The notes beneath the pieces were generated by a model that was not told where the DNA came from, ran no database searches, and was given only the letters and a program-made list of their open reading frames with translations. Both the position numbers and the translations under genes were made by a program. This document shows, in pieces, positions 6,360-60,622 of a stretch of DNA of 64,000 nt. Source of the DNA: Hyalangium minutum (lineage in GTDB: Bacteria; Myxococcota; Myxococcia; Myxococcales; Myxococcaceae); NCBI RefSeq assembly GCF_000737315.1, contig NZ_JMCB01000002.1, positions 248,001-312,000 of the forward strand, given 5' to 3'. Each line of letters begins with the position of its first letter. The first letter of the stretch is position 1.

Positions 6360-7529
6360 TCAGTGGAACGGAAGGGCCGCGAGCCGCTCCCGGAACATCT
6401 CCAGCGCCTCGCGCAGCTCCACGTCCTCCAGCCCCTCGCCAGGGGCGCGGCGGTGCTTGCGCAGGAAGGCATCGAAGGCCGCCGAGCGGCCATAGAGCTG
6501 GCTCGCCCTCTCCAGGGCCTCCAGCAGCACCCGCTCGGCTCCCGGTGAGCCCAGGTAGAGGTGCATCACGGCCTGCTCCAGCTTCGCGCCGCAGGCCGCC
6601 CACACCGCCCGGTCGTGCACCGTGAGCACCTGGGTGGTGAGCTCCTCGGCCACCCGCTCCAGCACCGCCAAGACCGGCTGCACCGCGCGCAGCAGCACCT
6701 CGCCCTCCACCCGGGGCTCGCGCGCCAGCTGCTGCAGCTGCTCGCGCAGCTCGATCAGGGTCCGCTTGTCGCGGGTGCGCATCGTCAGCGAGGCCGGCAT
6801 CGCCGCGAAGGACGAGAGGCTCTCCTCCACCTGCCGCGCGAGCGCCGGGAGCCCCTCGGGCGCTGTGCGCGCCACCCGCTCGAGCTTGCTCTGCAGCGAG
6901 CGGCGCAGGTCCATCACCGCGCTTCGCAGCCCCACCGCCGCCGCCATCTGCAGCCCGAACCCAGGGACCACCTCTTCGCGGCTCACTGCCTCGAAGGCCG
7001 CCGCCGTCAGGTACACCAGGTCTCCGATTCGCGAGCGGAAGTCGAGGCGGAAGGACTGCAGCTCCGTCATCAGCGCCCAGCGGTCCGTCACCACCTCCGG
7101 GCGGCGAACCCGCTCGCCCAGATCCGCCACCCGCCGCGCCAGCCGCTCCGCGCTCTGCTGGCAGACGGCCTCCACCTCCCGCGCCAGCCGCTCGTCCGCG
7201 CTGGCCGGGGGCGGCCTCCAGCCCGTGTCGCCTCCCGCCGAGCGCTCGGGGGCCGGGAACTGCGTGCGGATGACCGTGATGAGGTGGTTCACGTCTCCCA
7301 GCGTCTCTCCCAGCGCAGGGGCCATGGTCTCCCATAGCGAGAGGTCTGCTCCGTCCGGCTCGGCCGTGGTGGGCTCGTACTTGACGATGCTCAGGTACCC
7401 CAGCCGATCAATGGCCACCGCCGCGGCCCGGTACACCTGCTCCAACTGCTCGGCGTGCTCCCGATCCGTCAGTGCTTCGAGCAGCGCTTCGAGGCGCGGC
7501 GGGAGGGCGTCTTGAGGCGGGCGGGACAT
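6360..7529 (-). CDS. Hypothetical all-alpha-helical protein
   Basis: 389-aa ORF with strong GC3 bias; L/A/E/R-rich; no recognisable motif. Confidence 0.8.
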   Translation of the reverse strand: MSRPPQDALPPRLEALLEALTDREHAEQLEQVYRAAAVAIDRLGYLSIVKYEPTTAEPDGADLSLWETMAPALGETLGDVNHLITVIRTQFPAPERSAGGDTGWRPPPASADERLAREVEAVCQQSAERLARRVADLGERVRRPEVVTDRWALMTELQSFRLDFRSRIGDLVYLTAAAFEAVSREEVVPGFGLQMAAAVGLRSAVMDLRRSLQSKLERVARTAPEGLPALARQVEESLSSFAAMPASLTMRTRDKRTLIELREQLQQLAREPRVEGEVLLRAVQPVLAVLERVAEELTTQVLTVHDRAVWAACGAKLEQAVMHLYLGSPGAERVLLEALERASQLYGRSAAFDAFLRKHRRAPGEGLEDVELREALEMFRERLAALPFH

Positions 7530-7662
7530 GGCCGTGAGCATAGGGATGGGAAAGCTCGGGTATCAGGAACGTCTAACCGGGACGCTACCGCAAGTCCGAG
7601 AAAACCCCTCGATCGAGGCCACGAGCAAGGCTAGACACGGGCGCCTGCCCTCTGGAGCCCCC

Positions 7663-9216
7663 ATGCGCCTGAGCCTTGCTTCCCTTTTGGCCATTCTCTG
7701 TGTCAGTTGCAGCACTACCCCTCCGCCGTCTCCCACGCCTCCTCCGCCTCCCACGCCTCCGCTGTCGCCCGAGGCCACCGCCGTCTTCGCCCGCGCCGAG
7801 GCGCCCGGTCCTGGCGCCGCGCTCGTGGTGAACCTGGACGCCTTCGAGGCGCTGGGGCTCGCGGGCAAGGGGCCCACGATGCAGCAGCTGGCCAGCGTGT
7901 CCACCGCCATCATGTCCCAGCTCTCGACGGCGGAGGGCTCGGAGGGCCAGTTCTTCGCCCGGGGCGCCGTGGTGAGCGCCCTGCTGCGAGACTGGGCGAA
8001 GTGGCCCGGCCTGCGCCGTATTGCCTTCCTCGTCCCCTCGGACCGCGTCCTGGCGGACGGGGCTGGGGTTCTCCCCCAGGTGGCCGTGGGTGCATTGGCT
8101 GTGGATGAGGGCTCTCCGGACAACGCCCAGCTGCTCTCCGCCGTCGTCGCGCTTGTGCGTGCCGCGGCCGTGGAGGTGACACGTGAGGGCGCTGACCCCC
8201 GCGTCGTTCTCCAGGGACAGGACGTGTGCGTGGTGGGGAAGGAGCTGGGCTTCCCGGTGTGCGTCCGTCCCCGGCGCGGGCTGATCCTGTTCGGCACGCC
8301 CACGGCCCTGGGGGCGCTCGAGGCGCTGCCGCCCGTCACCGCACCGGCTGCCGCTCCCGGTGAGGCACCGCTGCTGCTGGGCCTGCGCGTGGATTTGGGC
8401 GCCAAGGGCCGCGCGCGCCTGGCCTTCACCGGCCGCGATGCGGTGCGTCTCGCGCTCCACGTGGAGGGCACCACCGCGAAGGACATCGCCATGGCCGAGT
8501 CCTTGGTGAAGAAGGCGCTCACGGATTACGACGCGCACCAGGCCGAGGTGCGTCAGCGCATCGCCACCGGCCTGTCCGAGGTGCAGCGCTCCATTGCCCA
8601 GGATCCCGCCGCGCCGGCCACGCTGAAGCAGGCGGCCACGGGCCTCACCGCGGACCGGGTGGTGGACGAGAAGGGCTACTGGGCCCAGGCGCGCCAGTCC
8701 GTGCAGGTGTCCTCCACGCAGGACAGCCTCTCCCTGTCGCTCACCGTCCCCGCGGGTGCGGTGAAGGACATGTCCGAGCAGATGGCCTCCGGCGGCACCC
8801 CCGTGGCCCTGGTGGGCATCATGGCCGCCATCGCCATCCCCAACTTCATCAAGTTCCAGGCGCGCGCCAAGCAGTCCGAGGCGAAGATGAACCTCAAGGC
8901 GGCCTATGTCGCCCAGCGCGCCTACGTGATGGAGAAGGACCGGTTGGGCCGCACCTTCGAGGAGATCGGCTTCGCGCCGGAGCCGGGCCGCCGTTACACC
9001 TACTGCATGGGCAAGCAGTGCCTGCCCTGTGACAGGAAGGACTGCAAAGTGGCGCCGGAGCCCTCGCCGTGCCAGGGGCTCACCACGCTGGGCAAGAGCG
9101 CGAATGACAACTTCTCCATCTGCGCGTACGGCAACGTGGACTCGGACGCCGCCTGGGATGTGTGGGTCATCGACAAGAGCGGCGAGCCGGAGAACCTGAG
9201 CAACGACATGGAGTAA
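7663..9216 (+). CDS. Lipoprotein with C-terminal PilA-like type IV pilin domain
   Basis: MRLSLASLLAILCVSC lipobox, Pro linker; C-terminal VGIMAAIAIPNFIKFQARAKQSEAKMNLK..Y..Q......DR......IGFAPE.G.RY.Y closely follows myxobacterial PilA. Confidence 0.85.
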   Translation: MRLSLASLLAILCVSCSTTPPPSPTPPPPPTPPLSPEATAVFARAEAPGPGAALVVNLDAFEALGLAGKGPTMQQLASVSTAIMSQLSTAEGSEGQFFARGAVVSALLRDWAKWPGLRRIAFLVPSDRVLADGAGVLPQVAVGALAVDEGSPDNAQLLSAVVALVRAAAVEVTREGADPRVVLQGQDVCVVGKELGFPVCVRPRRGLILFGTPTALGALEALPPVTAPAAAPGEAPLLLGLRVDLGAKGRARLAFTGRDAVRLALHVEGTTAKDIAMAESLVKKALTDYDAHQAEVRQRIATGLSEVQRSIAQDPAAPATLKQAATGLTADRVVDEKGYWAQARQSVQVSSTQDSLSLSLTVPAGAVKDMSEQMASGGTPVALVGIMAAIAIPNFIKFQARAKQSEAKMNLKAAYVAQRAYVMEKDRLGRTFEEIGFAPEPGRRYTYCMGKQCLPCDRKDCKVAPEPSPCQGLTTLGKSANDNFSICAYGNVDSDAAWDVWVIDKSGEPENLSNDME

Positions 9217-9277: not shown

Positions 9278-12200
9278 ATGAACGTCCGGTCCCGCCGCCG
9301 GCTCATTGCTGGCGGCATCTGTGCGGTGCTCGCGGGAGTCTCGCTCGCTGTTCTCAGCTCGCAGAGGTGTTTGTCCGCCTGGATCTTCCAGGGCGTGAAG
9401 GTGAGGCAGTGCCCGGATGGGCGCTTCCGGCAGACGGTGGGGCTGCAGGTGGATGGGCTGGCCCGTGAGCGCAGCGGCTCCGTGCGCGCCTGGGCCCTGG
9501 CCCATGGCGTGGGCAAGTCCTACAGCCAGGAGCTGCTGGCGCGCATGAAGCCCTCGAAGGCCGAGCTGGTGCTCCTGGATGCCGCGGGCCAGGAGACGCC
9601 GCTGAAGCCCGAGAAGGACTGGAAGCGGGAGGACAACGGAGACCTCTGGGCCGAGCTGAAGCTGCCCGCGCTCCCCGATGGCGACTACCGGCTGCGCGCT
9701 CGCATCACCACGCGCCTGGGCACGGACACCGTGGAGACCGCGCTTCCTTTATATGCACCCGCGCGAGTCCACGTTCTCACGGATCGCCCGCTCTACGAGC
9801 CCGGCCACCGCGTGCAGTTCCGCGCCGTGGCCCTGCGCGCCAAGGGACTGAGCCCCCTGGATGGGCGCCCGGGGACGTGGACGGTGGTGGACCCCAACGG
9901 AGACGTGGTGGTGGAGGAGCGGTCCCCCGCCGGTCCCTGGGGCGTGGTGTCTGGTGCCTTCCCGCTGGACCGCGGCGCGCCCACGGGCACGTGGACCGTG
10001 CGGTGGCTGAGCGGTGGCACCAGCGGAGAGGCTTCCTTCCGGGTGGAGCCCTTCACCCTGCCGCGCTTCCGGGTGGAGGCCTCCAGCCCTCAGGCCTTCT
10101 GGCGCGCGGGTGACGCGCCCGTGGTGGAGGGACAGGTGCTCTACAGCTCTGGAGCGCCCGTCGCGGGCGCGAAGGTGTCGCTGGAGTGGAATCACTTCGG
10201 AGGCTGGCCGCCTCCCACCGAGTGGTTCGATGGAGGCGGGCTGCCCGTCGCGGCGAAGGCGGATGCGGCCGGCCGCTTCCGGGTAACTCTGCCGCGCGTG
10301 CCTCAGGATCTGCGAGGCCAGGTCACGCTCTCCGCCAGCGTGGCGGCCACGGACCCTGCGGGCGATACCGTGCGCGGTGGCGTCTCCCTGCTGCTCTCCG
10401 AGGATGCGCTCGCCGTCTCCGCCGTGACCGAGCTGGAGTCCGGGTTGGTGGAGAACTACAGCAACCGCGTGTTCATCCGGGCCACCACTGCGGATGGGCA
10501 GGCGCTCCCAGGCGCCGAGCTCACCGTGAAGCGCGCGTGGGACCCCAAGGATCCGGGTGTGAAGACAGTGGCGGACGAGGATGGGGTCGCGTCCTTGCAG
10601 CTGGATCCGGGCGTCGCCGTCAACGTCGTTGTCCCCGCCATGCCCGTGCGCCGCAAGCCGCTGCCGAACCCGGTGGAGCTGATGGGCTCGAGTGACCTGC
10701 TCTCTCGCGACGAGGAGGCGGGCCTGGGGGATCAGGTGGCCCTGGAGAAGTGGCTGCCCGCCTTCTTCCCCTGCGCGCGCTTCATCGTCCCCGACTCGGC
10801 GGACACCGACCAGCAGCTGTCCGTCCGGGTGAGCTCCAGCGGAGCGGTGGTGGATGTGGTGGGCGAGCAGGGGCGGCTCTCGGCCTGTCTCGCGGATGCA
10901 GCCCGCACGCGGACGCTGCCTCCGGGGCGCGAGCGCATGCTGAACCTGACCCTGCAGCTCGTGGATCCCCAGCTGCCCACGCTCGGGGTCGAGATGAAGG
11001 CCGCGAACGACGGGCCCGTGGATTCGCGGCTCTATGCGGCGCTGGAAGAGGCGGCCCGTGATGCGCGCCCGTGTCTGCCCGCGAAGCTCTCCGAGGCGTC
11101 CGATGTGCCCGCCACCCTCCGGTGGCGGCTCCGGGCAGGCCAGAAGGATGTGGAGGTGGGGTGGGTGCCCGTCGAGAAGCAGGAAGGCGTCCCGATGCTC
11201 TCCTCCACGGTGCTCTCCTGCCTCCAGGCCCGGTTCTCGCGCCTGTCACTGCGCGATAGCTCGGATGAAGAGGTGGAGGCCTCGGACGAAGAGAGGGCAG
11301 GAGGGACCAAGGCGCAGCAGGACCAGATGGGCGTGGCGCTTCTCACGGCGGAGCCCGCGGAGGGCGATGGAGGCGAGGCTCGGGCGCAGGACACCACGCG
11401 CCTCGGCTTCGAGCTGATGGTGAGCGCCCAGGTGGAGGGCAAGGATGCCGGCTCTACGAAGCTCTTCCTGCCGCCCACGCGGCTGCCCACTCAGCGTCTG
11501 CGCGCCACACCTGCGCTGGCTCGCGCTGGCGAGGAGGTGCGTGTGGAGCTGCTCCGAGGTCCTGGCTTCAGTGGCTCACTGCCAGAGAAGCTCTGGTTGA
11601 GCGCGGGAGGAGAGCGGCTGGAGTCCCAGGTGGATTCGAAGTCCCGCGTGGCGACCTTCCGCCTGCCGGAGCAGTTCGAGGGCTGGGCCCAGGTGGACTG
11701 GGGAACAGCGGTGGCTCGCATCTACGTGGCGCCTCGCGCGCAGCTCTCCGTGGAGGTGGCTCCTGAGAAGCCCTCCTATGCTCCCGGTGAGGTGGCCCGC
11801 CTGCTGCTGCGCACCCGTGTGGATGGGAAGGACGGCCCCGCCGCCGTGGGCCTCTTCGGTGTGGATGAAGGGCTGGCGCAGCTGGCCTCGCTGCCGGGGC
11901 CGGGAGTGCTTGGGAGCCTGAGGCCCGCGCCCACGCTGGTCAGCTCCGCGTTCGGAGTGCTCGATGGACAGGCGCTCGCCATGGGCCGCATCCGAGGCGC
12001 CAACGCCGTGGCGGCCACCCTGCTGCGCGTCAGCTCGGCGCCCACCGTGGAGGAGTCGGACCCATCGCTGTCGCTCACCGCGCAGGCCGCCTTCGAGCCG
12101 GAGGCGGAGCTGACGGAGCCCTTCTACCGGGTGCTCGCTGAGCTGACCTCCCAGGTGCGTGTCTGGGAGGAGAAGGCTCCGGAAGGGGAGACGCTGAGCC

Positions 12201-12415
12201 CCGAGGGCATGGCGAAGCTGTGGGAGCAGGCGCTGGCGGCCTGCGAGAAGCGCGGAGAGCCGGTGACGGATGCCTACGGGCGCCGTCTGAAGCTGTCACG
12301 GCTGCCGCCCGAGCTGCTGGCCCTCACCGATCCCCGCATGGTGGTGGTGGGAGGGACGCGGCTGTCCGAAGACGTCGAGAACTGGGGCCAGTGGGTTGCC
12401 CGGGAGGCGCCATGA
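9278..12415 (+). CDS. Alpha-2-macroglobulin-like protein, N-terminal chain (MG domains)
   Basis: N-terminal TM; MG2 signature VLTDRPLYEPGHRVQFR, FRVEPFTLPRFRVE, and A2M_N_2-like KPSYAPGEVARL...AVGLFGVDEG. Confidence 0.85.
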   Translation: MNVRSRRRLIAGGICAVLAGVSLAVLSSQRCLSAWIFQGVKVRQCPDGRFRQTVGLQVDGLARERSGSVRAWALAHGVGKSYSQELLARMKPSKAELVLLDAAGQETPLKPEKDWKREDNGDLWAELKLPALPDGDYRLRARITTRLGTDTVETALPLYAPARVHVLTDRPLYEPGHRVQFRAVALRAKGLSPLDGRPGTWTVVDPNGDVVVEERSPAGPWGVVSGAFPLDRGAPTGTWTVRWLSGGTSGEASFRVEPFTLPRFRVEASSPQAFWRAGDAPVVEGQVLYSSGAPVAGAKVSLEWNHFGGWPPPTEWFDGGGLPVAAKADAAGRFRVTLPRVPQDLRGQVTLSASVAATDPAGDTVRGGVSLLLSEDALAVSAVTELESGLVENYSNRVFIRATTADGQALPGAELTVKRAWDPKDPGVKTVADEDGVASLQLDPGVAVNVVVPAMPVRRKPLPNPVELMGSSDLLSRDEEAGLGDQVALEKWLPAFFPCARFIVPDSADTDQQLSVRVSSSGAVVDVVGEQGRLSACLADAARTRTLPPGRERMLNLTLQLVDPQLPTLGVEMKAANDGPVDSRLYAALEEAARDARPCLPAKLSEASDVPATLRWRLRAGQKDVEVGWVPVEKQEGVPMLSSTVLSCLQARFSRLSLRDSSDEEVEASDEERAGGTKAQQDQMGVALLTAEPAEGDGGEARAQDTTRLGFELMVSAQVEGKDAGSTKLFLPPTRLPTQRLRATPALARAGEEVRVELLRGPGFSGSLPEKLWLSAGGERLESQVDSKSRVATFRLPEQFEGWAQVDWGTAVARIYVAPRAQLSVEVAPEKPSYAPGEVARLLLRTRVDGKDGPAAVGLFGVDEGLAQLASLPGPGVLGSLRPAPTLVSSAFGVLDGQALAMGRIRGANAVAATLLRVSSAPTVEESDPSLSLTAQAAFEPEAELTEPFYRVLAELTSQVRVWEEKAPEGETLSPEGMAKLWEQALAACEKRGEPVTDAYGRRLKLSRLPPELLALTDPRMVVVGGTRLSEDVENWGQWVAREAP

Positions 12416-14787
12416 AGCGCTCACTGTTGATGTTCATGGCTGGAGTTCTGTTCACCCTGTTCGCCCTGTTCACGCTGGTGTTGTTCGGGGACAGCATCCG
12501 CAGGCTCTTCGGCGCGTCCGCTTCCGCGTTGGCGGGCAACCAAGAGTCCTCCAGCTATTACTCCATGGCTCCGGCAGCTCCCTCGGCCCAGGCCGCGCCC
12601 GAGCCTGCTCCCGTCGAGGCGGAGATGGACGCGTTGGCGGGCGGCGGGGCCAGCAGCGAGCGCATGCGGGGCCTGTCGATGAAGCGCATGGAGACCATCC
12701 AGATCATCAAGGGCACCGGAGGCGCTGCGGCGAAGCCCAAGGTGGCCCTCGCCGAGGGTGGGGCGCAGGCCGAGGCCGCGGCCCCGAGCCGCGCCTGGTT
12801 CCCGGAGACGTTCCTCTTCGAGCCCCTCAAGGTGACGGACGAGTCCGGACAAGCGGTAGTGCCGGTAAAGGTGCCGGACCGGCTGACGCGGTGGCGGGTG
12901 CTGGCGCTGGCGCACTCGCGCTCGGGCGCGCAGGCCGGAGCGGTGACGAGCTTCTCGGGCACACTGCCCACGTATGTGGATCCGGTGGTGCCCGCCTTCC
13001 TGTTCACGGGGGATGCCGTGCGCCTGCCCGTGCAGGTGGTGAACACCACGGAGCAGGCGGTGGAGCAGCCGCTGAAGCTGGTGGCTGATGGCGCGGTGGT
13101 GGAGGGCGCCGCCACCCGCACCGTGCGGGTGCCCGCTCAGGGCAGCGTGGTGGAGTACGTGACGCTGAAGGCCACCCAGCCCGGCCCTGTCTCCTTGCAG
13201 GCCTCGCTGGGCACCACGGACGCCATCGTGCGCAGCTTCGATGTGAAGCCCACCGGCCGCCGGGTGGACCAGTCACGCGCGGGCTCGCTCGCGGCGCCGC
13301 GCACCCTGACGCTGGACGGTGTTGCCGACGCGCAGGCGGGCAGTGAGCGGGTGCGGCTGCAGGTGTTCCCGGGGGCTCTGGGCATGCTGCGCGCGGAGCT
13401 CTCCGCGGCGCCTGGGCGCTGGGGACTGGCGGAGGATGCGTATGCGCTGCTCTTGGCGGGCCGCGCGCCCGAGCTGCTGAAGTCGCTCGGGGAGACGGCG
13501 GATGCCGAGGCCCTCAAGGCCATGGCCTCCTTGTCCGGTCAGCGGGTGCTGCGAGCGGCCCGGGCACCGGATGTGCCCACTGCGGCCCTGCTGGCCCAGG
13601 CTGCACTGCAGCACCCGGACAACCCGGTGCTGTCCCGCCTGGGGGAGCGCCTGTCCGCGCAGGTGGCCAACGCCCAGCGTCCGGATGGCACGTGCCAGGG
13701 CGGGGACGGGTGGACGCTGCAGCGGTTACTCGTGGCCACCGCAGATTGTGCGCAGGCCGTGCGCGCGGGCGCCTCTCTCTCGGTGCCGGGCAAGCAGCGG
13801 GCTGCGGCCTTCTCCGCGCGCGCCATGGGGGCTTTCGAGCGCAACCTCTCGCGCGTGCAGGACGGCTACACCGCGGCGGCCATCCTGGCCAGCGGCGGGG
13901 TGACGGGCTCGCTCCAGGAGGCGTTGCGGGCCAAGGTGCGCGAGTCCTTGAAGAAGCGAGACGACGGCGCCGCATACCTGCCGGTGGAGCAGGGCGTGGT
14001 GCGCGCGGACGGAACGGTGCCGGGGGAGGCTGAAGCGACGGCGCTGGCAGTGCTCGCGCTCACGGGAGACAAGGCGGCGCCAATGGCGGACCTGGGCACC
14101 TCGCTGCTGGCCAGCTACCAGCCGGGGTGGGGCTGGGGGGATGGGCGCACCAACCTCCTGAGCCTCCAGGCCGCGATGGTGCTCTTCTCCGAGCCGCTGC
14201 CCTCACAGGTGCGCGTGGTGCTCGAGCGTGACGGGAAGACGGTGACCGAGGGCACCTTCGACGCCAAGGCCCTGCGGGACGTGCTCTCGATGGAGGCGGC
14301 GGCGATGGGCTCGGCAGGGACGCACACGTGGACGGTGCGCGCGGAGCCGGCGGTGCCTGGCCTGGGCTACTCGCTCACGTTGAGCGCGTACGTGCCGTGG
14401 AAGGCCGAGAAGGGCCAGGGACTGGAGCTGGCGGTGAAGGCGCCCGCCGAGGGCAAGGTGGGGATGCCGGCCGAGGTGACAGTGCAGGCGGCCTCTCCGG
14501 CGGGCATGGCACTCCAACTGCGCTACGCGTTGCCCGCGGGGGTCCAGGTGGACACTCCGAGCCTCGAGCGGCTCGTGGCCGAGCGGAAGGTGACGAAGTA
14601 CGAGGTGGAGGATGGGGCGCTCACGCTCACCCTGCCACCGCGCGGCGCGGGCGAGCCCTTCCAGGCCAGCTTCCGCGTGGTGCCGACGCTGGCGGGGACG
14701 CTTCAGGGAGGGGCCTCCAGCCTCTTCCCCGAGGGGCGGCAGGATCTCGTCTCGTACGTCCCGCCCGCTCAGTGGACGGTGCGCTGA
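12412..14787 (+). CDS. Alpha-2-macroglobulin-like protein, C-terminal chain; no thioester motif
   Basis: Own N-terminal hydrophobic segment; RAWFPETFLFEP..TDESG...VPDRLTRWRV, YVDPVVPAFL..GD.V..PV.V.N. ATGA overlap with the upstream gene; no CxEQ. Confidence 0.85.
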   Translation: MKRSLLMFMAGVLFTLFALFTLVLFGDSIRRLFGASASALAGNQESSSYYSMAPAAPSAQAAPEPAPVEAEMDALAGGGASSERMRGLSMKRMETIQIIKGTGGAAAKPKVALAEGGAQAEAAAPSRAWFPETFLFEPLKVTDESGQAVVPVKVPDRLTRWRVLALAHSRSGAQAGAVTSFSGTLPTYVDPVVPAFLFTGDAVRLPVQVVNTTEQAVEQPLKLVADGAVVEGAATRTVRVPAQGSVVEYVTLKATQPGPVSLQASLGTTDAIVRSFDVKPTGRRVDQSRAGSLAAPRTLTLDGVADAQAGSERVRLQVFPGALGMLRAELSAAPGRWGLAEDAYALLLAGRAPELLKSLGETADAEALKAMASLSGQRVLRAARAPDVPTAALLAQAALQHPDNPVLSRLGERLSAQVANAQRPDGTCQGGDGWTLQRLLVATADCAQAVRAGASLSVPGKQRAAAFSARAMGAFERNLSRVQDGYTAAAILASGGVTGSLQEALRAKVRESLKKRDDGAAYLPVEQGVVRADGTVPGEAEATALAVLALTGDKAAPMADLGTSLLASYQPGWGWGDGRTNLLSLQAAMVLFSEPLPSQVRVVLERDGKTVTEGTFDAKALRDVLSMEAAAMGSAGTHTWTVRAEPAVPGLGYSLTLSAYVPWKAEKGQGLELAVKAPAEGKVGMPAEVTVQAASPAGMALQLRYALPAGVQVDTPSLERLVAERKVTKYEVEDGALTLTLPPRGAGEPFQASFRVVPTLAGTLQGGASSLFPEGRQDLVSYVPPAQWTVR

Positions 14788-14850: not shown

Positions 14851-15975
14851 ATGGACCGAGCGATGTGGAAGGCCGTGGTGTTCGCGGGAGTCGTGGGGCT
14901 GAGCCTGACGGCGGGGGCGCAGCCTGTGGATGAGCAGGTGAGCGCAGGCTTGGAGTTTCTCGATCCTGAGTTCCGAGGGCTGTCGGCGACGTACCAGGAC
15001 AACAACCGGTGGATATGGCAGGCGCCCGTGGATCCGGTGACGGGAGTCATCCTCTCGTCTCAGCGCCAGCTCATCGACGGCCAGGCCACGTCCCTGCTCG
15101 AGTCCTTCCAGGGGCCCGAGTGGGTCCGAGGCAGCGACCGCATCCTTTATACGAAGACGGTCGACTCCGTTCCCAACCTCTGGATCAAGCGCCCCGGCAT
15201 GTCCCCCGCGCAGATCACCGCGCCGCCTGCGGCTCGCTATCTGCTCACGGGCATCCTCACGTCCCGGGGCACCGTGAAGGTGGTGTACCGCCGCAAGGAG
15301 ACGCTGGCCGGCGGTGGGCTCTCCCAGGGCGTGTACTGGCTGGACACCGCCACGCCTTCGGTCGAGCACCTGCTGCCCGGCGCGGACTTGGGCGTGGCGC
15401 CCGTGAGCTGGATTCCGGGTACTGAGGACCTCGTGTACACCCAGCAGCACGACATGGATCCGGGGCCGAGGGAACAGTGGGTGTCCCAGCTTGTTCGCCT
15501 GTCGACCGCGACGGGGGCCATCACCGTGCTCACGAGTGATTTGGACGCGAAAGAGGACTCCTTCGCGTTCCAGGCGCCGGAGGCGCAGCAGGCGCTGCGC
15601 TATGCGACGGTGGTGAATGGCGGCACCCTGCGAATCTATGGAGAAAGCGCTGCGGCGTGGGTCGACCTGCAGCCCCCATCGCAGCTGGGGTTCATGTACT
15701 CGCCCGAGGTGTTCCAGGCCCGCGACAGCCAGGGCACGGTGCGGACCTATTTCGTGGTGGTGATGCGCGCCAGCACCAACCCAGGGGACGTGGGAGAGGT
15801 GTGGGTGCTTGGCCTGAACGGCAGCGCGCTCCGGGTGGATGGCGGCACCGCGAGCCAGCCGCGCCAGCCGGCGGATCCGGAGGTCATCGCGGGTAGCAGC
15901 GAGATCTTCGTGTACTACAACAACTCGGCGAACCTGGCGCTGTGGCGGAGCCGCACGGGCCTGGCCGTGCCCTGA
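14851..15975 (+). CDS. Secreted beta-rich hypothetical protein (possible TolB-like propeller)
   Basis: Sec signal (LSLTAGA-Q); repeated Trp-containing blade-like segments (PEWVRGSDRILYT, PVSWIPGTEDLVYT). Confidence 0.7.
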   Translation: MDRAMWKAVVFAGVVGLSLTAGAQPVDEQVSAGLEFLDPEFRGLSATYQDNNRWIWQAPVDPVTGVILSSQRQLIDGQATSLLESFQGPEWVRGSDRILYTKTVDSVPNLWIKRPGMSPAQITAPPAARYLLTGILTSRGTVKVVYRRKETLAGGGLSQGVYWLDTATPSVEHLLPGADLGVAPVSWIPGTEDLVYTQQHDMDPGPREQWVSQLVRLSTATGAITVLTSDLDAKEDSFAFQAPEAQQALRYATVVNGGTLRIYGESAAAWVDLQPPSQLGFMYSPEVFQARDSQGTVRTYFVVVMRASTNPGDVGEVWVLGLNGSALRVDGGTASQPRQPADPEVIAGSSEIFVYYNNSANLALWRSRTGLAVP

Positions 15976-21541: not shown

Positions 21542-24157
21542 GTGAAAACGCTCGCCTCCGTCCTTTGTGTCCTCGTGGTTACCGGGGCCATGGCTCAGGC
21601 CCCGGACGCCGGAACTCCCTCTCCCGACGCAGGCGCCCCCACGGGGGTGCTCACCAAGGCTCCCGTCCTCAAGCGTCAGGTCGAGGCGCAGTATCCCCCC
21701 GAAGCCCTCGCGCAGCAGCTCGAGGGCACGGTGGTCATGCTCATCGACATCTCCGAGGCTGGCGCCGTCACGGACGTTGAGGTGACGCAGCCCGCGGGCC
21801 ACGGCTTCGATGAGGCCGCCGTCGCCGCCGTGCGCCAGTTCGAGTTCGAACCCGCCGAGGTGGACAACGTCCCCGCCCCGGTGCGCATCGAGTACGCCTA
21901 TCAGTTCGTCTGGCGCGCCCCACCCCCACCTGAGGGCACCGAGCCCGGGAAGCCTCCGGAGGCCCCGGTGAACTTCAGCGGCCGCGCCCTGGAGCGAGGC
22001 ACCCGCCGCCCGCTTGCCGGCGCCGAGGTGGCCCTGCCCGAGCTGCAGCTCACCACCAGCACGAACGAGGAGGGCCGCTTCTCCTTCCGAGGCGTCCCCG
22101 TGGGCAACCACGAGGTGCTCGTCATCCTCAGCGGGTACGACCGGTTCCGCACCCGGGAGACCATCGCCGAGGGCCAGGAGACGCAGGCCACGTACTACGT
22201 CCAGAGGCGCATCTTCAGCCAGTTCGAGACGGTGGTGCGCAGCGAGCGCGAGCGCAAGGAGGTGACGCGCACCACGCTCCAGGTGGCCGAGATTCAGAAG
22301 GTGCCAGGCACCCAGGGCGACACGCTCAAGGTGGTGCAGAACCTGCCCGGCGTGGCGCGGCCCGCGTTCAACGGCGGCCAGCTCGTCATCCGCGGCACCA
22401 GCCCGAATGACTCGGGTGTGTTCCTCGACGGGCAGCGCATTCCGCTGCTGTACCACTTCGGTGGCTTGACCTCCGTGTACAACTCGGAGCTGCTGGACTC
22501 GCTGGACTACCTGCCCGGCAACTTCTCTTCCTACTTCGGCAACGTCACCGGCGGCGTCATCAACGTGCGCAGCCGCGCCCCGAAGATGGACCGCTTCCAT
22601 GGCACCGTGGGCGTCAACCTCGTCGAGTCCAACGCCGTGCTCGAGGGCCCCATCACCGAGAACCTGGGCATCGCCGTGGCCGGCCGGCGCTCCTACGTGG
22701 ACCTGGTGCTCAAGCTGGTCCCCGAGAACGAGGACGGCCCCTCCATCCAGGTGGCCCCGCGCTACTACGACGCCCAGCTGAAGCTGAACTGGACACCCAG
22801 CAAGCGGCACACCTTCACTCTCCAGGGGCTCACCTCCAATGACACGCTGGGGCTGGTGTTCGACCGGCCCGCGGACCAGGACCCGAGCGTCAACGGCGAC
22901 TTCGAAGTGACGACCGGCTTCAACCAGCTGCGGCTCGGCCACCAGTACAAGGGCGGCGCGCTCACCGTGGAGAGCCAGGGCATGGTGGGCAACACGAAGA
23001 TCGAGTTCACCCTGGGCGATCGCTACCTGCGCATCAACGCGCTGGACTTGGATCTGCGCTCCACCGCCGAGTACACCCTCAGCGAGGCGCTCACCCTGGC
23101 TGCTGGGTTGGACATCCAGTACGCCGACGCCAGCGTGAGGGCGCGCGTGCAGGCTCCGCCTCGCGAGGGCGAGCCCGCGGGCCCGTTGGTGAACGAGGAG
23201 ATCATCACCGCGGACGCGGACTCCTATCAATACTACCCGGGCATCTGGGCCGAGGCGCGTTGGCGCCCGTTCAAGGAACTGCTCGTGGTGCCGGGCCTGC
23301 GCAGCGAGAGCTACCTCTTCGGAGAGCAGAAGGTGAACAAGCGCTCGCTCAACCCACGGCTGGCGGTGCGCTACTCGCTCACGGAGCAGGTGACGCTCAA
23401 GGGAGGCGCGGGCCTGTACCACGGGCCTCCGGCCCAGGAAGAGCCCAACAGCACCTTTGGCAACCCGGAGCTGAAGGCCAAGCGCTCCATCCAGTACAGC
23501 GTGGGCTCCGAGTGGCAGCCCACCCCTGAGTACTTCATCAGCGGCGAGCTCTTCTACAATGACTTGAGCCGCCTCATCGTCAGCTCGGACCGGCTGGTGG
23601 AGCGGGACGGGCAGTTGGTGCCCGAGCGGCTGACCAACGCGGGCACCGGCCGCATCTATGGCTTCGAGCTGCTGGCCCGCCGTGCCCTCACCGAGCGGTT
23701 CTTCGGGTGGGTGGCCTATACCTTCAGCAAGAGCCAGCGGCGGGACAAGCCGGACGCGGCGCTGCGCCTGTTCGACAACGACCAGACGCACGTGCTCACG
23801 GTGATTGGCAGCTACAAGCTGCCCGCGGGCTGGGAGGTGGGCGCGCGCTTCCGCTTCTCCTCGGGCAACCCGCTCACGCCCATCGTCGGCGCCCGAAGGG
23901 ATGACAACACGGATGTCTTCATTCCCGTGTTCGGGCCGGTGAACTCGCAGCGGCTGCCCAACTTCAACCAGTTGGACATCCGCGTGGACAAGAACTTCAT
24001 CTTCGACCAGTGGAGCCTGGATCTCTACGTGGACCTGACCAACGTCTATAACAACCCGGCGAAGGAAGGCCTCCTCTACAACTACAACTACTCCGAGTCG
24101 GCCTTCCTGGAGGGCCTGCCCATCCTGCCGATTTTCGGCGCCAAGGGGAGCTTCTGA
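21542..24157 (+). CDS. TonB-dependent receptor with N-terminal TonB C-terminal domain
   Basis: YPPEA...EGTV....I...G.V..V....GHGFDEAA..AVRQF.F.PA (TonB_C), prealbumin-like domain, plug (LPGV..IRG), beta-barrel ending in F. Confidence 0.92.
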   Translation: MKTLASVLCVLVVTGAMAQAPDAGTPSPDAGAPTGVLTKAPVLKRQVEAQYPPEALAQQLEGTVVMLIDISEAGAVTDVEVTQPAGHGFDEAAVAAVRQFEFEPAEVDNVPAPVRIEYAYQFVWRAPPPPEGTEPGKPPEAPVNFSGRALERGTRRPLAGAEVALPELQLTTSTNEEGRFSFRGVPVGNHEVLVILSGYDRFRTRETIAEGQETQATYYVQRRIFSQFETVVRSERERKEVTRTTLQVAEIQKVPGTQGDTLKVVQNLPGVARPAFNGGQLVIRGTSPNDSGVFLDGQRIPLLYHFGGLTSVYNSELLDSLDYLPGNFSSYFGNVTGGVINVRSRAPKMDRFHGTVGVNLVESNAVLEGPITENLGIAVAGRRSYVDLVLKLVPENEDGPSIQVAPRYYDAQLKLNWTPSKRHTFTLQGLTSNDTLGLVFDRPADQDPSVNGDFEVTTGFNQLRLGHQYKGGALTVESQGMVGNTKIEFTLGDRYLRINALDLDLRSTAEYTLSEALTLAAGLDIQYADASVRARVQAPPREGEPAGPLVNEEIITADADSYQYYPGIWAEARWRPFKELLVVPGLRSESYLFGEQKVNKRSLNPRLAVRYSLTEQVTLKGGAGLYHGPPAQEEPNSTFGNPELKAKRSIQYSVGSEWQPTPEYFISGELFYNDLSRLIVSSDRLVERDGQLVPERLTNAGTGRIYGFELLARRALTERFFGWVAYTFSKSQRRDKPDAALRLFDNDQTHVLTVIGSYKLPAGWEVGARFRFSSGNPLTPIVGARRDDNTDVFIPVFGPVNSQRLPNFNQLDIRVDKNFIFDQWSLDLYVDLTNVYNNPAKEGLLYNYNYSESAFLEGLPILPIFGAKGSF

Positions 24158-34643: not shown

Positions 34644-35780
34644 TCAGCGCGGCTCTTCCAGCATGAAGTCCGTCACGTCCTTCCACAGCTTCTCGAACTG
34701 AGGCCGCCGGAAGCCCGAGCCCGAGATCAGCCAGTCCACGTGCGGCGGCTGGTGCGTGGGCTGATCGAAGTGCCCAATCGCATCCAGGTGGTCCGCCCGG
34801 ACCGCCCCAATCACCTTGCCGAACACCTGCGAGCGCGTCGGCACCACGCCATCGCACGCCTGGGGCGCCGGTAGCGCTCCATAAGCCTCGATGAGCGCCG
34901 CCGTCTGCTCCGCCGTGTGCAGCGGCGTCTTGTTCAGCGGCATCCGGTGCGTCTGCCCGTACAGGAACGCGTACACGGTGTGGGTGATCTGCGCGTACGG
35001 ATCCAGCCCCGCGGACAGGCGCGTTCGCAGTGAGGGCTGCCGGGCCTGCGTCACCACCGAGCCGTAGCGCACCCCCGGCCGGTCCTCGCAGCCCGCGTTG
35101 AACAGGTCGATCCCCTCCGGGGTGAGCTGCGGAATGAGCGAGGTGTCCTTCCCCACGTCGCCCAGGAAGCGAGACACCGCCTCGCGCCGGTCCGCCGAGA
35201 AGTCCCCCAGCAGCTGATCGAACAGCTGGTCCAAAATCGTCTGCTTCCACCCGAGCTGATCATCCGCCCGCGACAGCAGGTGCCCCAGCCGGAACGCCAC
35301 CTTCAGCGGCAGCCGCCCGAAGCGCAGCACGTACACGGTGAACAGCGACAGCAGCTTCAGGATCTGCTGCCCGAACAGCCCCAGGAAGAAGGACGCCAGC
35401 GGCGTGCCCGCATGCGGCGTGGACACCGTCACCACCGAGCGGACCCGGCGCGCATACGGCTCCAGGTCCAGCCCTTCCCGCAGGGACGCCCCCGGGCTCA
35501 CGAACAGCCGCGCGTCCAGCCCCCCCGTGGAGTGCCCCACCAGGTGCACGGGCCCATCGTCCCCGCTGATGGTCTCCTGCACGCCCCGTAGCAGATCCGC
35601 CGCCCGCTGCCGGATGGAGGCCGTGGGGTGGGAGAGGATGGCCACCACCTCGGCCTCGATTCCCCGCCGGGCGAACTCCGCCTTCAGGAAGTCCCGGACG
35701 TGGCCGAAGTAGACCAGCTCGCCCAGGTTGGTGAAGCCGAAGAACCCCGGAACCAGATAGATGTGGTGCTTCACAGGCAT
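34644..35780 (-). CDS. Lipase/esterase (alpha/beta hydrolase)
   Basis: LVPGFFGF, GHSTGG, TPHAGTP, DGVVP, ADHLD. Confidence 0.88.
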   Translation of the reverse strand: MPVKHHIYLVPGFFGFTNLGELVYFGHVRDFLKAEFARRGIEAEVVAILSHPTASIRQRAADLLRGVQETISGDDGPVHLVGHSTGGLDARLFVSPGASLREGLDLEPYARRVRSVVTVSTPHAGTPLASFFLGLFGQQILKLLSLFTVYVLRFGRLPLKVAFRLGHLLSRADDQLGWKQTILDQLFDQLLGDFSADRREAVSRFLGDVGKDTSLIPQLTPEGIDLFNAGCEDRPGVRYGSVVTQARQPSLRTRLSAGLDPYAQITHTVYAFLYGQTHRMPLNKTPLHTAEQTAALIEAYGALPAPQACDGVVPTRSQVFGKVIGAVRADHLDAIGHFDQPTHQPPHVDWLISGSGFRRPQFEKLWKDVTDFMLEEPR

Positions 35781-35904
35781 TCCCTTCCACCTACCGGCCT
35801 CTTGGCTCCTGACTCAAGCCCATTGCTCGGCCGGCTGCTTATTGACGGGGGCTCCTTCTCGGGAAAGAACGGCCCTTCCTTCATTCACGCAAGGACGCCT
35901 ACAC

Positions 35905-37965
35905 GTGCATCGCTTCCTGCTCGCCCTCGGACTGCTCCTGTGCCTCCCCTCCCGCGCGGAGGAGGGGATGTGGACCTATGACGCCTTTCCCTCCGAGGCC
36001 GTCAAGAAAGCCTACGGCTTCGCCCCGACGCAGGCGTGGCTGGACTCGGTGCGCCTGGGCTCGGTCCGGCTCGCGGGTGGGTGCTCGGCCAGCTTCGTCT
36101 CGCCCAACGGCTTGGTGATGACCAACCACCACTGCATCCGCAGCTGCGTCGAGGACCTGTCCTCCCCCCAGAAGGACCTGCTGGCCACCGGCTTCTTCGC
36201 CCCCGAGTCCCAGTCCGAGCTGCGCTGCCCCAAGGTGGAGGCCAACCAGCTCGTGGAGATGACGGACGTCACCGCGCGGATGAACACCGCGACGAAGGGG
36301 CTCTCGGGCGCGCCGTTCAACACCGCCCTGAAGGCGGAGATGACGAAGGTGGAGACCGAGTGCGCCACCGGCCCAGACGTGCGCTGCGACGTGGTGACGC
36401 TCTACAACGGCGGCAAGTACCACCTCTATAAGTACCGCCGCTTCCAGGACGTGCGCCTGGCCTTCGCGCCCGAGTTCCCCATGGCCAGCTTTGGCGGCGA
36501 CCCGGACAACTTCAACTTCCCCCGCTATGGCTTCGATGTGGCCTTCGTGCGTGTCTGGGAGAACGGCCAGCCGGCCAAGACGCCCCACTACCTGCCGTGG
36601 GCGAAGCAGGGCGTGAAGGAAGGAGAGCTTGTCTTCGTCTCCGGCCATCCCGGTGGCACCGAGCGCAAGGGCAGCGTGGCGGAGCTGGAGTTCCAGCGCG
36701 ACGTGGCGCTGCCTTACACCTTGCTGTACCTCTCGGAGCTGCGCGGCATGCTGCGCGAGTTCTCCCAGGGCTCGCCGGAGCGGCTGCGCATCACCCGCTC
36801 GCACCTGCGCTCGGTGGAGAACGGCCTCAAGGCGCTGCGCGGCCGGCACCAGGCGCTGGCGGATTCGTCGCTGCTGGCGCAGAAGCGCAAGGCGGAGGCG
36901 GAGCTGCGGGCGAAGGTGCTGGCCCACCCGAAGCTGAAGGCCTCCACCGCCGGGGCCTGGGACGAGGTGACGCAGGCGCTCGAGCTCTACCGCCCCCTGC
37001 TGCCCGAGTACCGGCTGAAGGAGGCGGGCGATGGCTTCCAGTCCGAGCTCTTCACCCTCGCCCGCCAGCTGGTGCGCGCCGCCGACGAGCTGCCCAAGCC
37101 CAACGCGGAGCGCCTGCGCGAGTACACCGAGGGGCAGCTCCCCGCCCTGCGCCAGCAACTGCTGCGCGAGGCCCCCATCCCCCAGGACCTGGAGGTGGCC
37201 ACGCTGACCTTCGGCCTCAACCGGCTCCGCGAGACGCTGGGCGCGGACGACTCCTTCGTCAAGGCCGTGCTCGGCCGCGAGTCCCCGGCGGATCTGGCGC
37301 GTGCGCTGGTGACGGGCACGAAGCTGCAGGACGTGAAGGTGCGCCAGTCGCTGCTGGAGGGAGGCAAGGCCGCGGTGGAGGCCTCGCAGGATCCGATGAT
37401 CGTCCTGGCGCGCAAGGTGGACACCGAGGCCCGCGCGGTGCGCAAGCGCTACGAGGACACGGTGGAGGCCGTGCTCAAGCGCAACGGCGAGCGGCTCGCC
37501 CAGGCGCGGCTCGCCGTGTACGGCACCAGCGGCTACCCGGATGCCACCTTCACCCTGCGGCTCAATTACGGCGCGGTGAAGGGCTGGCAGGAGAATGGCC
37601 GCGCCGTGGCGCCCTTCACCACCTTCGGCGGCGCGTGGGAGCGCCACACCGGCAAGGATCCCTTCAAGCTGCCCGACACGTGGCTCGCGGCCCGGGGCAA
37701 GGTGCCGCCGGAGACCCCGCTCGACATGGCCACTACCAACGACATCATCGGCGGCAACTCGGGCTCCCCCATGGTGAACAAGGACGGGCACGTGGTGGGA
37801 CTCATCTTCGACGGAAATCTGCACTCACTCGGAGGACGGTATGCCTACGTGCCGGAGACGAACCGCGCCGTGGCCGTGACGGGCGTGGGAATCCTCGCCG
37901 GGCTCGAGCACCTCTATGGTGCCCAGCGGCTCGTGGAGGAGCTGCGCGCCGCCCAGGCCCCGTGA
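35905..37965 (+). CDS. S46 family dipeptidyl peptidase (DPP7/11-like)
   Basis: Signal peptide, EEGMW, GCSASFVSPNGLVMTNHHC, YPDATFTLRL, DIIGGNSGSP, GLIFDGN. Confidence 0.95.
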   Translation: MHRFLLALGLLLCLPSRAEEGMWTYDAFPSEAVKKAYGFAPTQAWLDSVRLGSVRLAGGCSASFVSPNGLVMTNHHCIRSCVEDLSSPQKDLLATGFFAPESQSELRCPKVEANQLVEMTDVTARMNTATKGLSGAPFNTALKAEMTKVETECATGPDVRCDVVTLYNGGKYHLYKYRRFQDVRLAFAPEFPMASFGGDPDNFNFPRYGFDVAFVRVWENGQPAKTPHYLPWAKQGVKEGELVFVSGHPGGTERKGSVAELEFQRDVALPYTLLYLSELRGMLREFSQGSPERLRITRSHLRSVENGLKALRGRHQALADSSLLAQKRKAEAELRAKVLAHPKLKASTAGAWDEVTQALELYRPLLPEYRLKEAGDGFQSELFTLARQLVRAADELPKPNAERLREYTEGQLPALRQQLLREAPIPQDLEVATLTFGLNRLRETLGADDSFVKAVLGRESPADLARALVTGTKLQDVKVRQSLLEGGKAAVEASQDPMIVLARKVDTEARAVRKRYEDTVEAVLKRNGERLAQARLAVYGTSGYPDATFTLRLNYGAVKGWQENGRAVAPFTTFGGAWERHTGKDPFKLPDTWLAARGKVPPETPLDMATTNDIIGGNSGSPMVNKDGHVVGLIFDGNLHSLGGRYAYVPETNRAVAVTGVGILAGLEHLYGAQRLVEELRAAQAP

Positions 37966-54810: not shown

Positions 54811-54859
54811 GATCGGACCAAACCATAGTGCGAACAGGGGTTTGGCGGGAGGGGGGCGC

Positions 54860-55498
54860 CTACTCCTTGGGCGGGTTGAAGCCATTGACCAGGAGCGTGT
54901 CCAGGGCGGCCACGACGGGATCGTACGTCACCGTGGCGCGGAACAGGTTCTGGTAGGTGAGCAGGCCGATGTAGCTGCCCATCATGGCGTGAGCGGTCTG
55001 GATTGGCTCCAGGTCCGTGCGGAACTCCTGCTTCTTCTGCCCGTAGCGGATGATGCCGGCCAGCACGTGGACGTAGATGTTCAGCTTCTCGCGCAGGGCC
55101 TCGGCCACGCGCTCGTTGGACTCGGCGGACTCGGCGGCCACCATGCCAAAGAAGATGCCGTGCTCGCGGTGGTAGCGCAGGAACTGCGAGGTGCGGTTCA
55201 TGAAGCGGATGATCTGCTCGCGCGCGGGCAGGGAGCGCTGCTCGGCGAGCAGGTCCACGAACTCCTTGAGGTAGCGCTCATGCAGCTCGTCGATGGCCGC
55301 CAGGAGCAGATCTTCCTTGGTGGGGAAGTGCCAGTAGAGGGCGCCGGGTGTCATGCGGATGGCCTTGGCCAGCTCCGCCATCGTTGTTGCCAGGAAGCCC
55401 CGCCGCGCGAAGAGGGTGATGGCTGCTTCGAGAATCTCCACCCGGGTGCGTGCTGCGCGCTCTTGCTTGATCTCCCGCTTCGCAGGTTCCTTGCCCAT
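54860..55498 (-). CDS. TetR/AcrR family regulator
   Basis: ILEAAITLFARRGF..TT...LAK...MTPGALYWHFPTKEDL. Confidence 0.95.
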   Translation of the reverse strand: MGKEPAKREIKQERAARTRVEILEAAITLFARRGFLATTMAELAKAIRMTPGALYWHFPTKEDLLLAAIDELHERYLKEFVDLLAEQRSLPAREQIIRFMNRTSQFLRYHREHGIFFGMVAAESAESNERVAEALREKLNIYVHVLAGIIRYGQKKQEFRTDLEPIQTAHAMMGSYIGLLTYQNLFRATVTYDPVVAALDTLLVNGFNPPKE

Positions 55499-56839: not shown

Positions 56840-60439
<3,600 letters not shown>

Positions 60440-60622
60440 GCGCCGGCCAGACGATGGACGGGGGAGCGGCGCTTGGGAAGAGGGATGGCAAGCGGGGGGC
60501 ATGCGGTGACCTTGCGGGGGGCACCGTAGCGGGGGACGCACTTCGGAGAAAGGTGGGGGCCTCGTCTGGGCTCCAAGAACTTGGAGTCCCCAGTGAAGTC
60601 CGGATGACTCGCTGCTCAGTGG

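Follow-up and report, generated by a model that had tools for sequence, protein, structure and literature searches.

The fusion gene and its product

We analysed a stretch of 64,000 nucleotides from Hyalangium minutum (contig NZ_JMCB01000002.1, positions 248,001 to 312,000 of the forward strand), which we call the window; coordinates are positions in it unless another locus is named. It carries a gene whose product joins the N-terminal part of a putative lipoprotein to a C-terminal module of the PilA family of type IV pilins. This fusion gene is followed after 62 bp, on the same strand, by genes for an MG2-domain and an A2M-domain protein (Table 1). The pilin module has lost the N-terminal features of a prepilin, and we tentatively regard the protein as a lipid-tethered mimic of a pilin.

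The gene lies inside a listed open reading frame (ORF) at 7528-9216 (+). The ATG at 7663 (MRLSLASLLAILCVSC...) was set as the true start by alignment with more than 50 homologues, which open with the same MR(L) signal peptide, and the sequence GGAG is found 5 nt upstream of this codon. The start at 7528, which gives the longest ORF, was rejected because the homologues begin at the MRL of 7663 and because the longer form would overlap the divergent 393-aa gene starting at 7541. The deduced protein is identical to P0001, a called gene on JMCB01000002.1 (assembly GCA_000737315.1). Sharma et al. 2018 (PMC6060248) list JMCB as the accession of H. minutum DSM 14724.

Five parts can be distinguished in the fusion protein: a signal peptide ending at Cys16, a Pro-rich tether, an alpha/beta domain (the N-domain), a junction and the PilA-family module. 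At least 90% of the sequences share M1 and C16, in an alignment of 40 homologues as well as in one of 62. The protein thus has the N-terminal signal peptide with a closing lipobox cysteine that is expected of a lipoprotein, and it is predicted to be lipidated at Cys16. The lipobox of the window protein, MRLSLASLLAILCVS-C16, is atypical at position -3 (C-V-S-C); those of the wider family include AAGC, WAGC and VAGC. The Pro-rich tether had a low predicted local distance difference test score (pLDDT) in both of the AlphaFold2 (AF2) models described below. The helix alpha1 of the pilin module, at aa 381-428, is made up of a less hydrophobic remnant of alpha1N (pilin positions 10-24) and of alpha1C.

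Table 1. Features of the fusion gene and the genes adjacent to it
Feature	Position	Strand	Basis or remark
Complete coding sequence of the lipoprotein-pilin fusion, 517 aa plus stop	7663..9216	+	ORF list, sequence, homologue alignment
Lipoprotein-type signal peptide, aa 1-16 (MRLSLASLLAILCVSC)	7663..7710	+	M1 and C16 conserved in homologues
Pro-rich tether, aa 17-34 (STTPPPSPTPPPPPTPPL)	7711..7764	+	read from the sequence
N-terminal alpha/beta domain, aa 35-371	7765..8775	+	AF2; no family match
Junction EQMASGGTP, aa 372-380, in place of pilin positions 1-9	8776..8802	+	position table of 62 sequences
Pilin alpha1 helix from position 10, aa 381-428	8803..8946	+	HMMER alignment to 8tj2, conservation table, AF2
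Pilin head, aa 429-517, six conserved Cys	8947..9213	+	AF2, Foldseek, Cys counts
1045-aa protein, MG2 domain and weak A2M_BRD	9278-12415	+	
791-aa protein, A2M domain	12412-14787	+	4-bp overlap with the MG2 gene
Divergent 393-aa protein	6360-7541	-	no Pfam or NCBIfam match

The pilin module has lost the features of a prepilin

Residues 381-517 of the fusion protein (about 8803-9213) match the Pfam family PF14245 Pilin_PilA with an E-value of 3.8e-16 (60 bits; cut-off 28.5), and the module also matches the NCBIfam family NF041775 typeIV_PilA_Myxo with an E-value of 3.9e-31. The latter match covers positions 22-114 of the 214 positions of the profile and scores 108.7 bits against an equivalog cut-off of 400 bits, so the protein does not qualify as a PilA equivalog. 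The closest relative of known structure is PilA of Myxococcus xanthus (8tj2; HMMER, E 4.3e-29, query residues 8-120 aligned with 10-117 of mature PilA). The two are identical at 32 of 44 residues at pilin positions 10-53 (about 73%) and at 46 of 67 at positions 10-76, a similarity that on these alignments is far above chance.

In a position table of the 62 family members we saw that the family follows PilA almost residue by residue from position 10 on. L40 is retained in all 62 members, A20, P22 and E35 in 61 each, G14 in 60, A18 in 58, R30 and Q33 in 57 each, and F24 in 56. The lineage of P0032 and P0034 has a PGFLKL variant. The alpha1 region is also the best conserved part of the protein, with a mean pairwise identity of 45-47% compared with 33% in the N-domain and 34% in the head.

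Upstream of position 10 the resemblance ends. There is no G/FTLIE cleavage site (the slash marks the cut) in the window protein. Its pilin positions 1-9 read E-Q-M-A-S-G-G-T-P, and with the preceding residue (positions -1 to 9, S-E-Q-M-A-S-G-G-T-P) it is clear that Gly-1, Phe1 and Glu5 are all missing. The junction is rich in Gly, Ser and Thr, and across the family positions 1-9 give way to an acidic or Gly-rich linker. A motif search that included cryptic PilD sites found the prepilin motif in none of the 62 members, and only one of the 62 has Glu at position 5, which is Ser in the window protein. Similarly, the fusion protein gave no match to the Pfam family PF07963 N_methyl. An internal start at Met374, which would create a mini-leader (MASGG/TPVAL), was also considered. 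It was rejected because this residue is Leu or Ile in the homologues, because Glu5 would still be lacking and because the codon lies inside a continuous conserved ORF.

Type IV pilins are defined by their N-terminal processing. The module lacks the leader, the Gly-1/Phe1 pair, Glu5 and a hydrophobic alpha1N. Since there is no class III signal peptide, Phe1 or Glu5, and since alpha1N has been shortened and has lost hydrophobicity, PilD cannot use the module as a substrate and can neither cut nor methylate it, and the role of an ordinary filament subunit is excluded. A preliminary description of this DNA had placed a PilA-like pilin without a prepilin cleavage site at the C-terminus of a lipoprotein. 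The family and structure matches, the conserved signal peptide with Cys16 and the replaced positions 1-9 bear this out. The close match to PilA that it had noted holds for the alpha1 helix, but not at the level of the whole PilA profile, where the score stays far below the equivalog cut-off.

Hydrophobicity of alpha1N and topology

In a canonical pilin, alpha1N comprises about 20-25 hydrophobic residues that span the inner membrane. In the fusion protein only positions 10-24 are left. To compare this segment with its counterparts, values of the Hessa biological hydrophobicity scale were summed over windows of 19 aa, which is a simple additive estimate. The 59 scored members of the lipoprotein-fusion family gave sums from +1.0 to +8.4 with a median of +3.3, and the window protein gave +3.2. 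Full-length canonical prepilins of the same PilA family gave -1.8 to -2.9, and leaderless fusions that are anchored in the membrane (with a DUF4190 domain or a zinc ribbon, see below) gave -2.0 to +1.2. Across the family, positions 8-13 and 15-17 of the remnant have consistently lost bulky hydrophobic residues.

The positive sums throughout the family argue that the segment has been selected away from a membrane span, and this comparison disfavours reading the alpha1N remnant as a transmembrane helix. We infer that the remnant is a stalk and that the whole protein lies on the periplasmic side of the membrane or further out. The less hydrophobic alpha1N, the eight conserved cysteines and the sharing of the head with exported prepilins all point to a location of the whole protein outside the cytoplasm.

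Cysteines of the head and predicted structure

The head of the module (CMGKQCLPCDRKDC) is rich in cysteine. C448, C453, C470 and C487 are present in 62 of 62 members and C456 and C461 in 60 of 62. In addition, C189 and C200 of the N-domain are found in all 62, which gives eight invariant or nearly invariant cysteines, six in the head and two in the N-domain. Such conservation fits an oxidising compartment, and the head is probably stabilised by disulfides, with three pairs to be expected in it and a further one between C189 and C200; in M. xanthus PilA the cysteines of the head do form disulfides (bioRxiv 10.1101/2023.07.22.550172). Distant members of the family have a fourth cysteine pair, formed by pilin position 29 and the penultimate residue (FQC...NDC), as do the canonical Cys-rich prepilins. 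The Hyalangium/Archangium clade, including the window protein, has Ala at position 29 and no C-terminal Cys, and the fourth pair is lost in this clade. The preliminary description had drawn attention to the Cys-rich head. It is present and its cysteines are conserved, but it is not special to the fusion, as the same Cys pattern is common to canonical prepilins from Myxococcota metagenomes that are 45-53% identical to the module.

Two AF2 models were made. The first was built from 40 close sequences and modelled the head poorly (pLDDT 47-69); it was superseded by a run with 62 sequences, which reached a mean pLDDT of 84 and a predicted template modelling score (pTM) of 0.66. In the second model the N-domain has block means of pLDDT 73-95, and the head is mostly at 85-97, with 79 in the last residues. 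A helix at residues 382-425 corresponds to alpha1 of pilins. When compared with the PDB by Foldseek, the C-terminal part matched 8tj2_A with an E-value of 3.8e-7 and a probability of 1.0, and also 6xxd and 2hi2. By AF2, Foldseek and PF14245, therefore, the predicted head has the pilin fold, in which alpha1C packs on an antiparallel beta-sheet. Residues 379-393 have a pLDDT below 50, so the monomer model shows no confident packing or burial of the stalk.

The N-domain (aa 35-371) gave no match to Pfam or NCBIfam at E-values up to 1 and none in a profile search of PDB sequences. Two Foldseek searches of the PDB, one with each AF2 model, returned nothing better for it than an E-value of about 0.1; recurring matches to ARPC2 were dismissed as noise, with a template modelling score of about 0.2. 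To judge from the models, the N-domain is a conserved fold without a solved relative. A profile search with each domain, which the preliminary description had proposed, thus assigned the pilin part (PF14245 and NF041775) and left the N-domain without a counterpart in Pfam, NCBIfam or the PDB.

Distribution of the family

A word-indexed search returned 53 relatives, nearly all of about 515 aa and of the same architecture, from Hyalangium, Archangium and metagenomes. At their source they are named "type IV pilin protein" or "PilA", and such database labels are wrong for the fusion proteins. When a profile of the N-domain was compared with 1.84 billion cluster representatives, only 48 proteins were found. 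Almost all of them have 494-554 aa and carry the pilin module, with identities down to about 30%. The distant members come from assemblies of uncultured Myxococcales or "Deltaproteobacteria". The pilin head is missing from only three of the full-length matches, the most remote ones (P0081, P0088 and P0092). The C-terminal part is aberrant in P0058 and P0061; P0049 and P0053 are frameshifted, and a few shorter matches are fragments.

More than 60 sequence clusters, drawn from independent genomes and metagenomes, contain uninterrupted ORFs of this architecture. To judge from this spread, the pairing of the N-domain with the leaderless pilin module is old and stable. A scan of species-representative genomes for the N-domain, done with a strict pattern method, gave matches in Archangium, Hyalangium and "Myxococcaceae" only, and the family is likely absent from M. 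xanthus.

We found no description or test of an architecture of lipoprotein plus leaderless pilin in the literature. In a survey of myxobacterial type IV pili, seven additional pilA homologues were reported in H. minutum on the basis of PF14245 (Sharma et al. 2018, PMC6060248). The same survey left sequences with extended N-termini out of its tree and said nothing more about them, and the fusion gene was probably among the sequences set aside in this way. Its architecture, lipobox, missing PilD site and function were not described there (PMC6060248).

Relatives of the pilin module

The C-terminal 144 aa are closest to four groups of proteins, namely fragments from the same family, short Cys-rich prepilins, other leaderless fusions and the large PilA. 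The large PilA of Myxococcus and Corallococcus is only 35-40% identical to the module. The fusion shares with M. xanthus PilA (8tj2, NF041775) the alpha1 helix from position 10, the IGFAPE..RY.Y motif, a C-terminal strand N.D...DVWVI and the predicted fold. It differs in having no leader, Gly-1, Phe1 or Glu5, with residues 1-9 replaced, in a head that is about 70 residues shorter and has an internal deletion and a different Cys pattern, and in the lipoprotein domain of about 370 aa upstream of the pilin part.

The short Cys-rich prepilins come from uncultured Myxococcota (P0104, P0115 and P0120). They resemble the module in the size of the head and in the Cys pattern (YTYC..C..C...C...C...CA...), at 45-53% identity. 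Unlike the fusion, they start with an ordinary class III signal peptide (K/R-G-FTLIELMIV), and their alpha1N is strongly hydrophobic (Hessa sums of -2.7 to -2.9). Prepilins of this type are the likely source of the module, as far as sequence comparison can tell. The gene for P0120 is followed by a Wzy_C gene; a pilA gene beside a gene for a pilin O-glycosylase is an arrangement known from other bacteria.

Further leaderless fusions were found with a DUF4190 domain (P0105 and P0109), with a zinc ribbon and a membrane span (P0107), and as a 214-aa lipoprotein-pilin (P0112). As in the window protein, the module begins at about position 8-10, there is no PilD site and the N-terminal part is fixed. 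P0112 also has a lipobox and a weakly hydrophobic remnant (Hessa +1.7). The DUF4190 and zinc-ribbon forms, in contrast, keep a full-length hydrophobic span (Hessa -2.0 to about 0) and would therefore be anchored in the inner membrane with the N-terminus inside. None of these fusions has the 340-aa N-domain, and the 563-aa gene upstream of the gene for P0112 is unrelated to it. On these sequences, a PilA-family module detached at about position 8-10 and grafted onto other N-termini is a recurrent theme in Myxococcota, and the window protein is its largest and best-conserved example. The other leaderless fusions come from Myxococcota and "Deltaproteobacteria" assemblies, and none was beside pil genes in the loci examined (L016-L018).

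To our knowledge, every characterised extra module of a pilin sits C-terminal to the pilin part. In the modular type IV pilins PilB and PilC of S. sanguinis and CpaL of Caulobacter, a large additional domain accompanies the pilin module (10.1101/2021.01.27.428410; PMC13170226). These proteins carry the additional domain behind the pilin part and retain an intact class III signal peptide, and they are accordingly processed and incorporated into filaments. The fusion is the inverse of this layout, with the extra domain first and the N-terminus of the pilin blocked, and it does not belong with the modular pilins.

Genes adjacent to the fusion gene

No terminator-like site was detected between the fusion gene and the MG2 gene. 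The MG2 and A2M genes together resemble an alpha-2-macroglobulin-like protein split in two, each half with its own hydrophobic N-terminal segment. The arrangement of fusion, MG2 and A2M genes, including the split, recurs in the loci L002 and L004. There the whole region is syntenic with the window, so this linkage says little. It is absent from L003, L005, L007, L023 and L024 (the contexts of P0052, P0058, P0063, P0065 and P0057). The A2M-like pair next to the fusion gene is thus specific to one clade, confined to the window, L002 and L004, and the linkage is not conserved across the family. In the five distant contexts, the neighbours are unrelated to those in the window and comprise NHL and DUF7379 proteins, DUF6909 and FHA proteins, an ankyrin protein, an acetyltransferase with TacA, and NHL with other proteins, respectively. 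The gene neighbourhood points to no functional partner.

In two of the five distant contexts, large proteins with NHL repeats are encoded close to the fusion gene (L003 3861-6452 and L024 139-4194), which may be a coincidence. On the other side of the fusion gene, a 392-aa protein without a Pfam match is encoded in L002 and L004 at the position of the divergent 393-aa protein of the window. It is not found beside distant members, and the upstream gene in L003 is unrelated to the 393-aa gene. Just downstream of the A2M gene, at 14851-15975 (+), lies a gene for a 374-aa protein with a signal-like N-terminus and no family match. In L002 a 374-aa gene also follows the A2M gene, behind a short gene of 100 aa.

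Possible function

We favour, with a probability of roughly 0.45, the view that the fusion protein is a lipid-tethered, non-polymerising mimic of a pilin, the stalk and head of which bind a partner that recognises pilins. The protein would be exported by the Sec pathway, lipidated at Cys16 and tethered to the membrane by its Pro-rich linker. It would then lie wholly outside the cytoplasm, with the N-domain followed by the PilA-derived module from position 10. Without a class III signal peptide, Phe1 or Glu5, with the first third of its membrane helix missing and the rest of alpha1N less hydrophobic, the module could not sit in the inner membrane as a prepilin does. The stalk keeps the small and kink residues of helix-helix packing (G14, A18, A20 and P22) beside the presumably disulfide-stabilised head, although these residues no longer have a role in membrane insertion or PilD recognition. 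Stalk and head could thus bind the alpha1 helices of other pilins or a periplasmic pilin-binding component, and the N-domain might supply an effector or scaffold function. A connection to type IV pili is plausible from these features.

Several observations weigh against this view. Neither pil nor gsp genes lie beside the fusion gene in eight contexts, several of them from syntenic close relatives, and all-against-all BLAST revealed no gene common to the neighbours in the window and in three distant loci. The pilin module is not indispensable to the N-domain, as the three distant relatives without a pilin head show, and alpha1N is degenerate in some lineages (P0062, P0074 and P0077). The stalk may be packed against the N-domain. 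The topology, moreover, is a prediction, and the alpha1N remnant, with a Kyte-Doolittle (KD) hydropathy of 1.8 over 19 residues, is still a borderline case for spanning a membrane.

The geometry of the filament limits what such a mimic could do. In type IV filaments the N-terminus of alpha1 is buried in the core and points to the base, as in 8tj2. Here it is joined to a domain of about 370 aa, and normal incorporation, the tip included, is therefore excluded. The preliminary description had already spoken of a tethered pilin mimic, which we retain as a structural interpretation of a protein that is not a PilD substrate. Priming of pilus assembly, which it had also suggested, and a place at the tip are sterically unlikely on this geometry. 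Its other suggestions, that the protein caps or decoys pilus assembly or baits phage, are speculative. With a bulky domain on the N-terminus of alpha1, the base is the sole site in the filament that would be open. The lipid-tethered module might take the last-added position there as a basal terminator or anchor, with its alpha1 stalk (positions 10-53) docked under the last PilA subunits. Docking would stop polymerisation and block the re-entry of subunits into the inner membrane, leaving the pilus locked, anchored or released. We know of no base-capping subunit for type IV filaments, and we regard this variant as improbable.

A quite different possibility, which we find doubtful but deserving of serious attention, is that the pilin fold has been exapted. 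The compact, disulfide-rich head would then be displayed on its helical stalk to bind ligands or mediate adhesion, without contact to pilins or the pilus machinery, and it might cooperate with the A2M-like pair in the Hyalangium/Archangium clade. The lack of pil genes at any of the eight loci would fit, as would the degenerate alpha1N of some members. The occurrence of the leaderless module on unrelated N-termini (DUF4190, a zinc ribbon with a membrane span, a short lipoprotein) suggests a portable module of general use, and in the window, L002 and L004 the fusion gene is immediately followed by the MG2 and A2M genes in the same orientation, with no terminator-like site detected in between. 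This neighbourhood, however, is limited to close relatives in which the wider region is syntenic, and a mere spacer would hardly be expected to retain G14, A18, A20 and P22 in about 95% of members. It is also conceivable that the protein is bitopic in the inner membrane, with the alpha1N remnant as a stop-transfer anchor between a periplasmic N-domain and a cytoplasmic head, in which CX4CX2CX4C would bind a metal. The KD value of the segment is the highest in the protein, positive charges follow it (KFQARAKQSEAK), and the cysteines are spaced much as in a zinc-binding motif. The hydrophobic core (VALVGIMAAIAI), however, runs for just 12 residues without a break, and the Hessa sum of +3.2, with at least +1.0 in all scored members, contrasts with the mostly negative values, up to about +1.2, of relatives that really span the membrane. 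The same Cys-rich head, moreover, occurs in canonical exported prepilins, and the disulfides of M. xanthus PilA speak against a cytoplasmic head. We consider a bitopic protein quite unlikely.

Proteolytic release of the pilin part is still less likely in our judgement. The N-domain would in that case be a pro-region or chaperone removed by a protease other than PilD, and the fragment would assemble or be secreted, comparable to the type V pilins with their lipoprotein precursors. The junction is indeed predicted to be flexible (pLDDT below 50), and members of the close clade have a pair of glycines ahead of the pilin part (G377 and G378, conserved in at least 90%). The pair is not kept in the wider family, though, where SGL, SSL, GGL, SNA and others occur, and no protease gene is conserved nearby. 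A fragment without residues 1-9 and Glu5 would still fall short of what polymerisation of the type IV kind is known to need, and the N-domain equals the head in conservation and has an invariant pair of cysteines itself. Visible frameshifts in a few relatives from the databases (P0049 and P0053, as noted above) might raise the suspicion of an assembly error, a pseudogene with a frameshift or the accidental joining of two genes. As intact ORFs of 494-554 aa keep the same architecture in more than 60 clusters, down to about 30% identity, the gene is neither an artefact nor a pseudogene. The GC content at third codon positions is 0.88 throughout the ORF, and with Leu or Ile in place of Met374 in the homologues there is no conserved internal start. 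We attach practically no weight to this explanation.

In more than 60 sequence clusters, then, the layout of the modular pilins is inverted: the N-terminus of the pilin is blocked by a large lipoprotein domain and its membrane helix has evolved away from insertion, yet alpha1 retains its packing residues. If the module has retained the ability to bind pilins, the tethered mimic that we favour would be a natural, genetically encoded one that could regulate, terminate or anchor pili, and it could serve as a tool for the recognition of alpha1 by alpha1 outside the membrane. If it has not, the family would indicate that the pilin fold can be reused as a free-standing module of the periplasm or the cell surface.

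Other genes in the window

No pil genes were seen among the ten largest ORFs of the window that were scanned. The rest of the window has content typical of myxobacteria; the genes at 35761-37965, 40085-41989, 45632-47089, 53197-54885 and 56840-60541 include an S46 peptidase, a dCache-HAMP chemoreceptor, two Ser/Thr kinases and a 1233-aa hybrid histidine kinase (Reg_prop/Y_Y_Y). At 21542-24157 (+) an 871-aa chain is encoded with TonB_C, CarboxypepD_reg and Plug domains and the barrel of a TonB-dependent receptor, and a similar gene with TonB_C and Plug is present in the syntenic region of L002.

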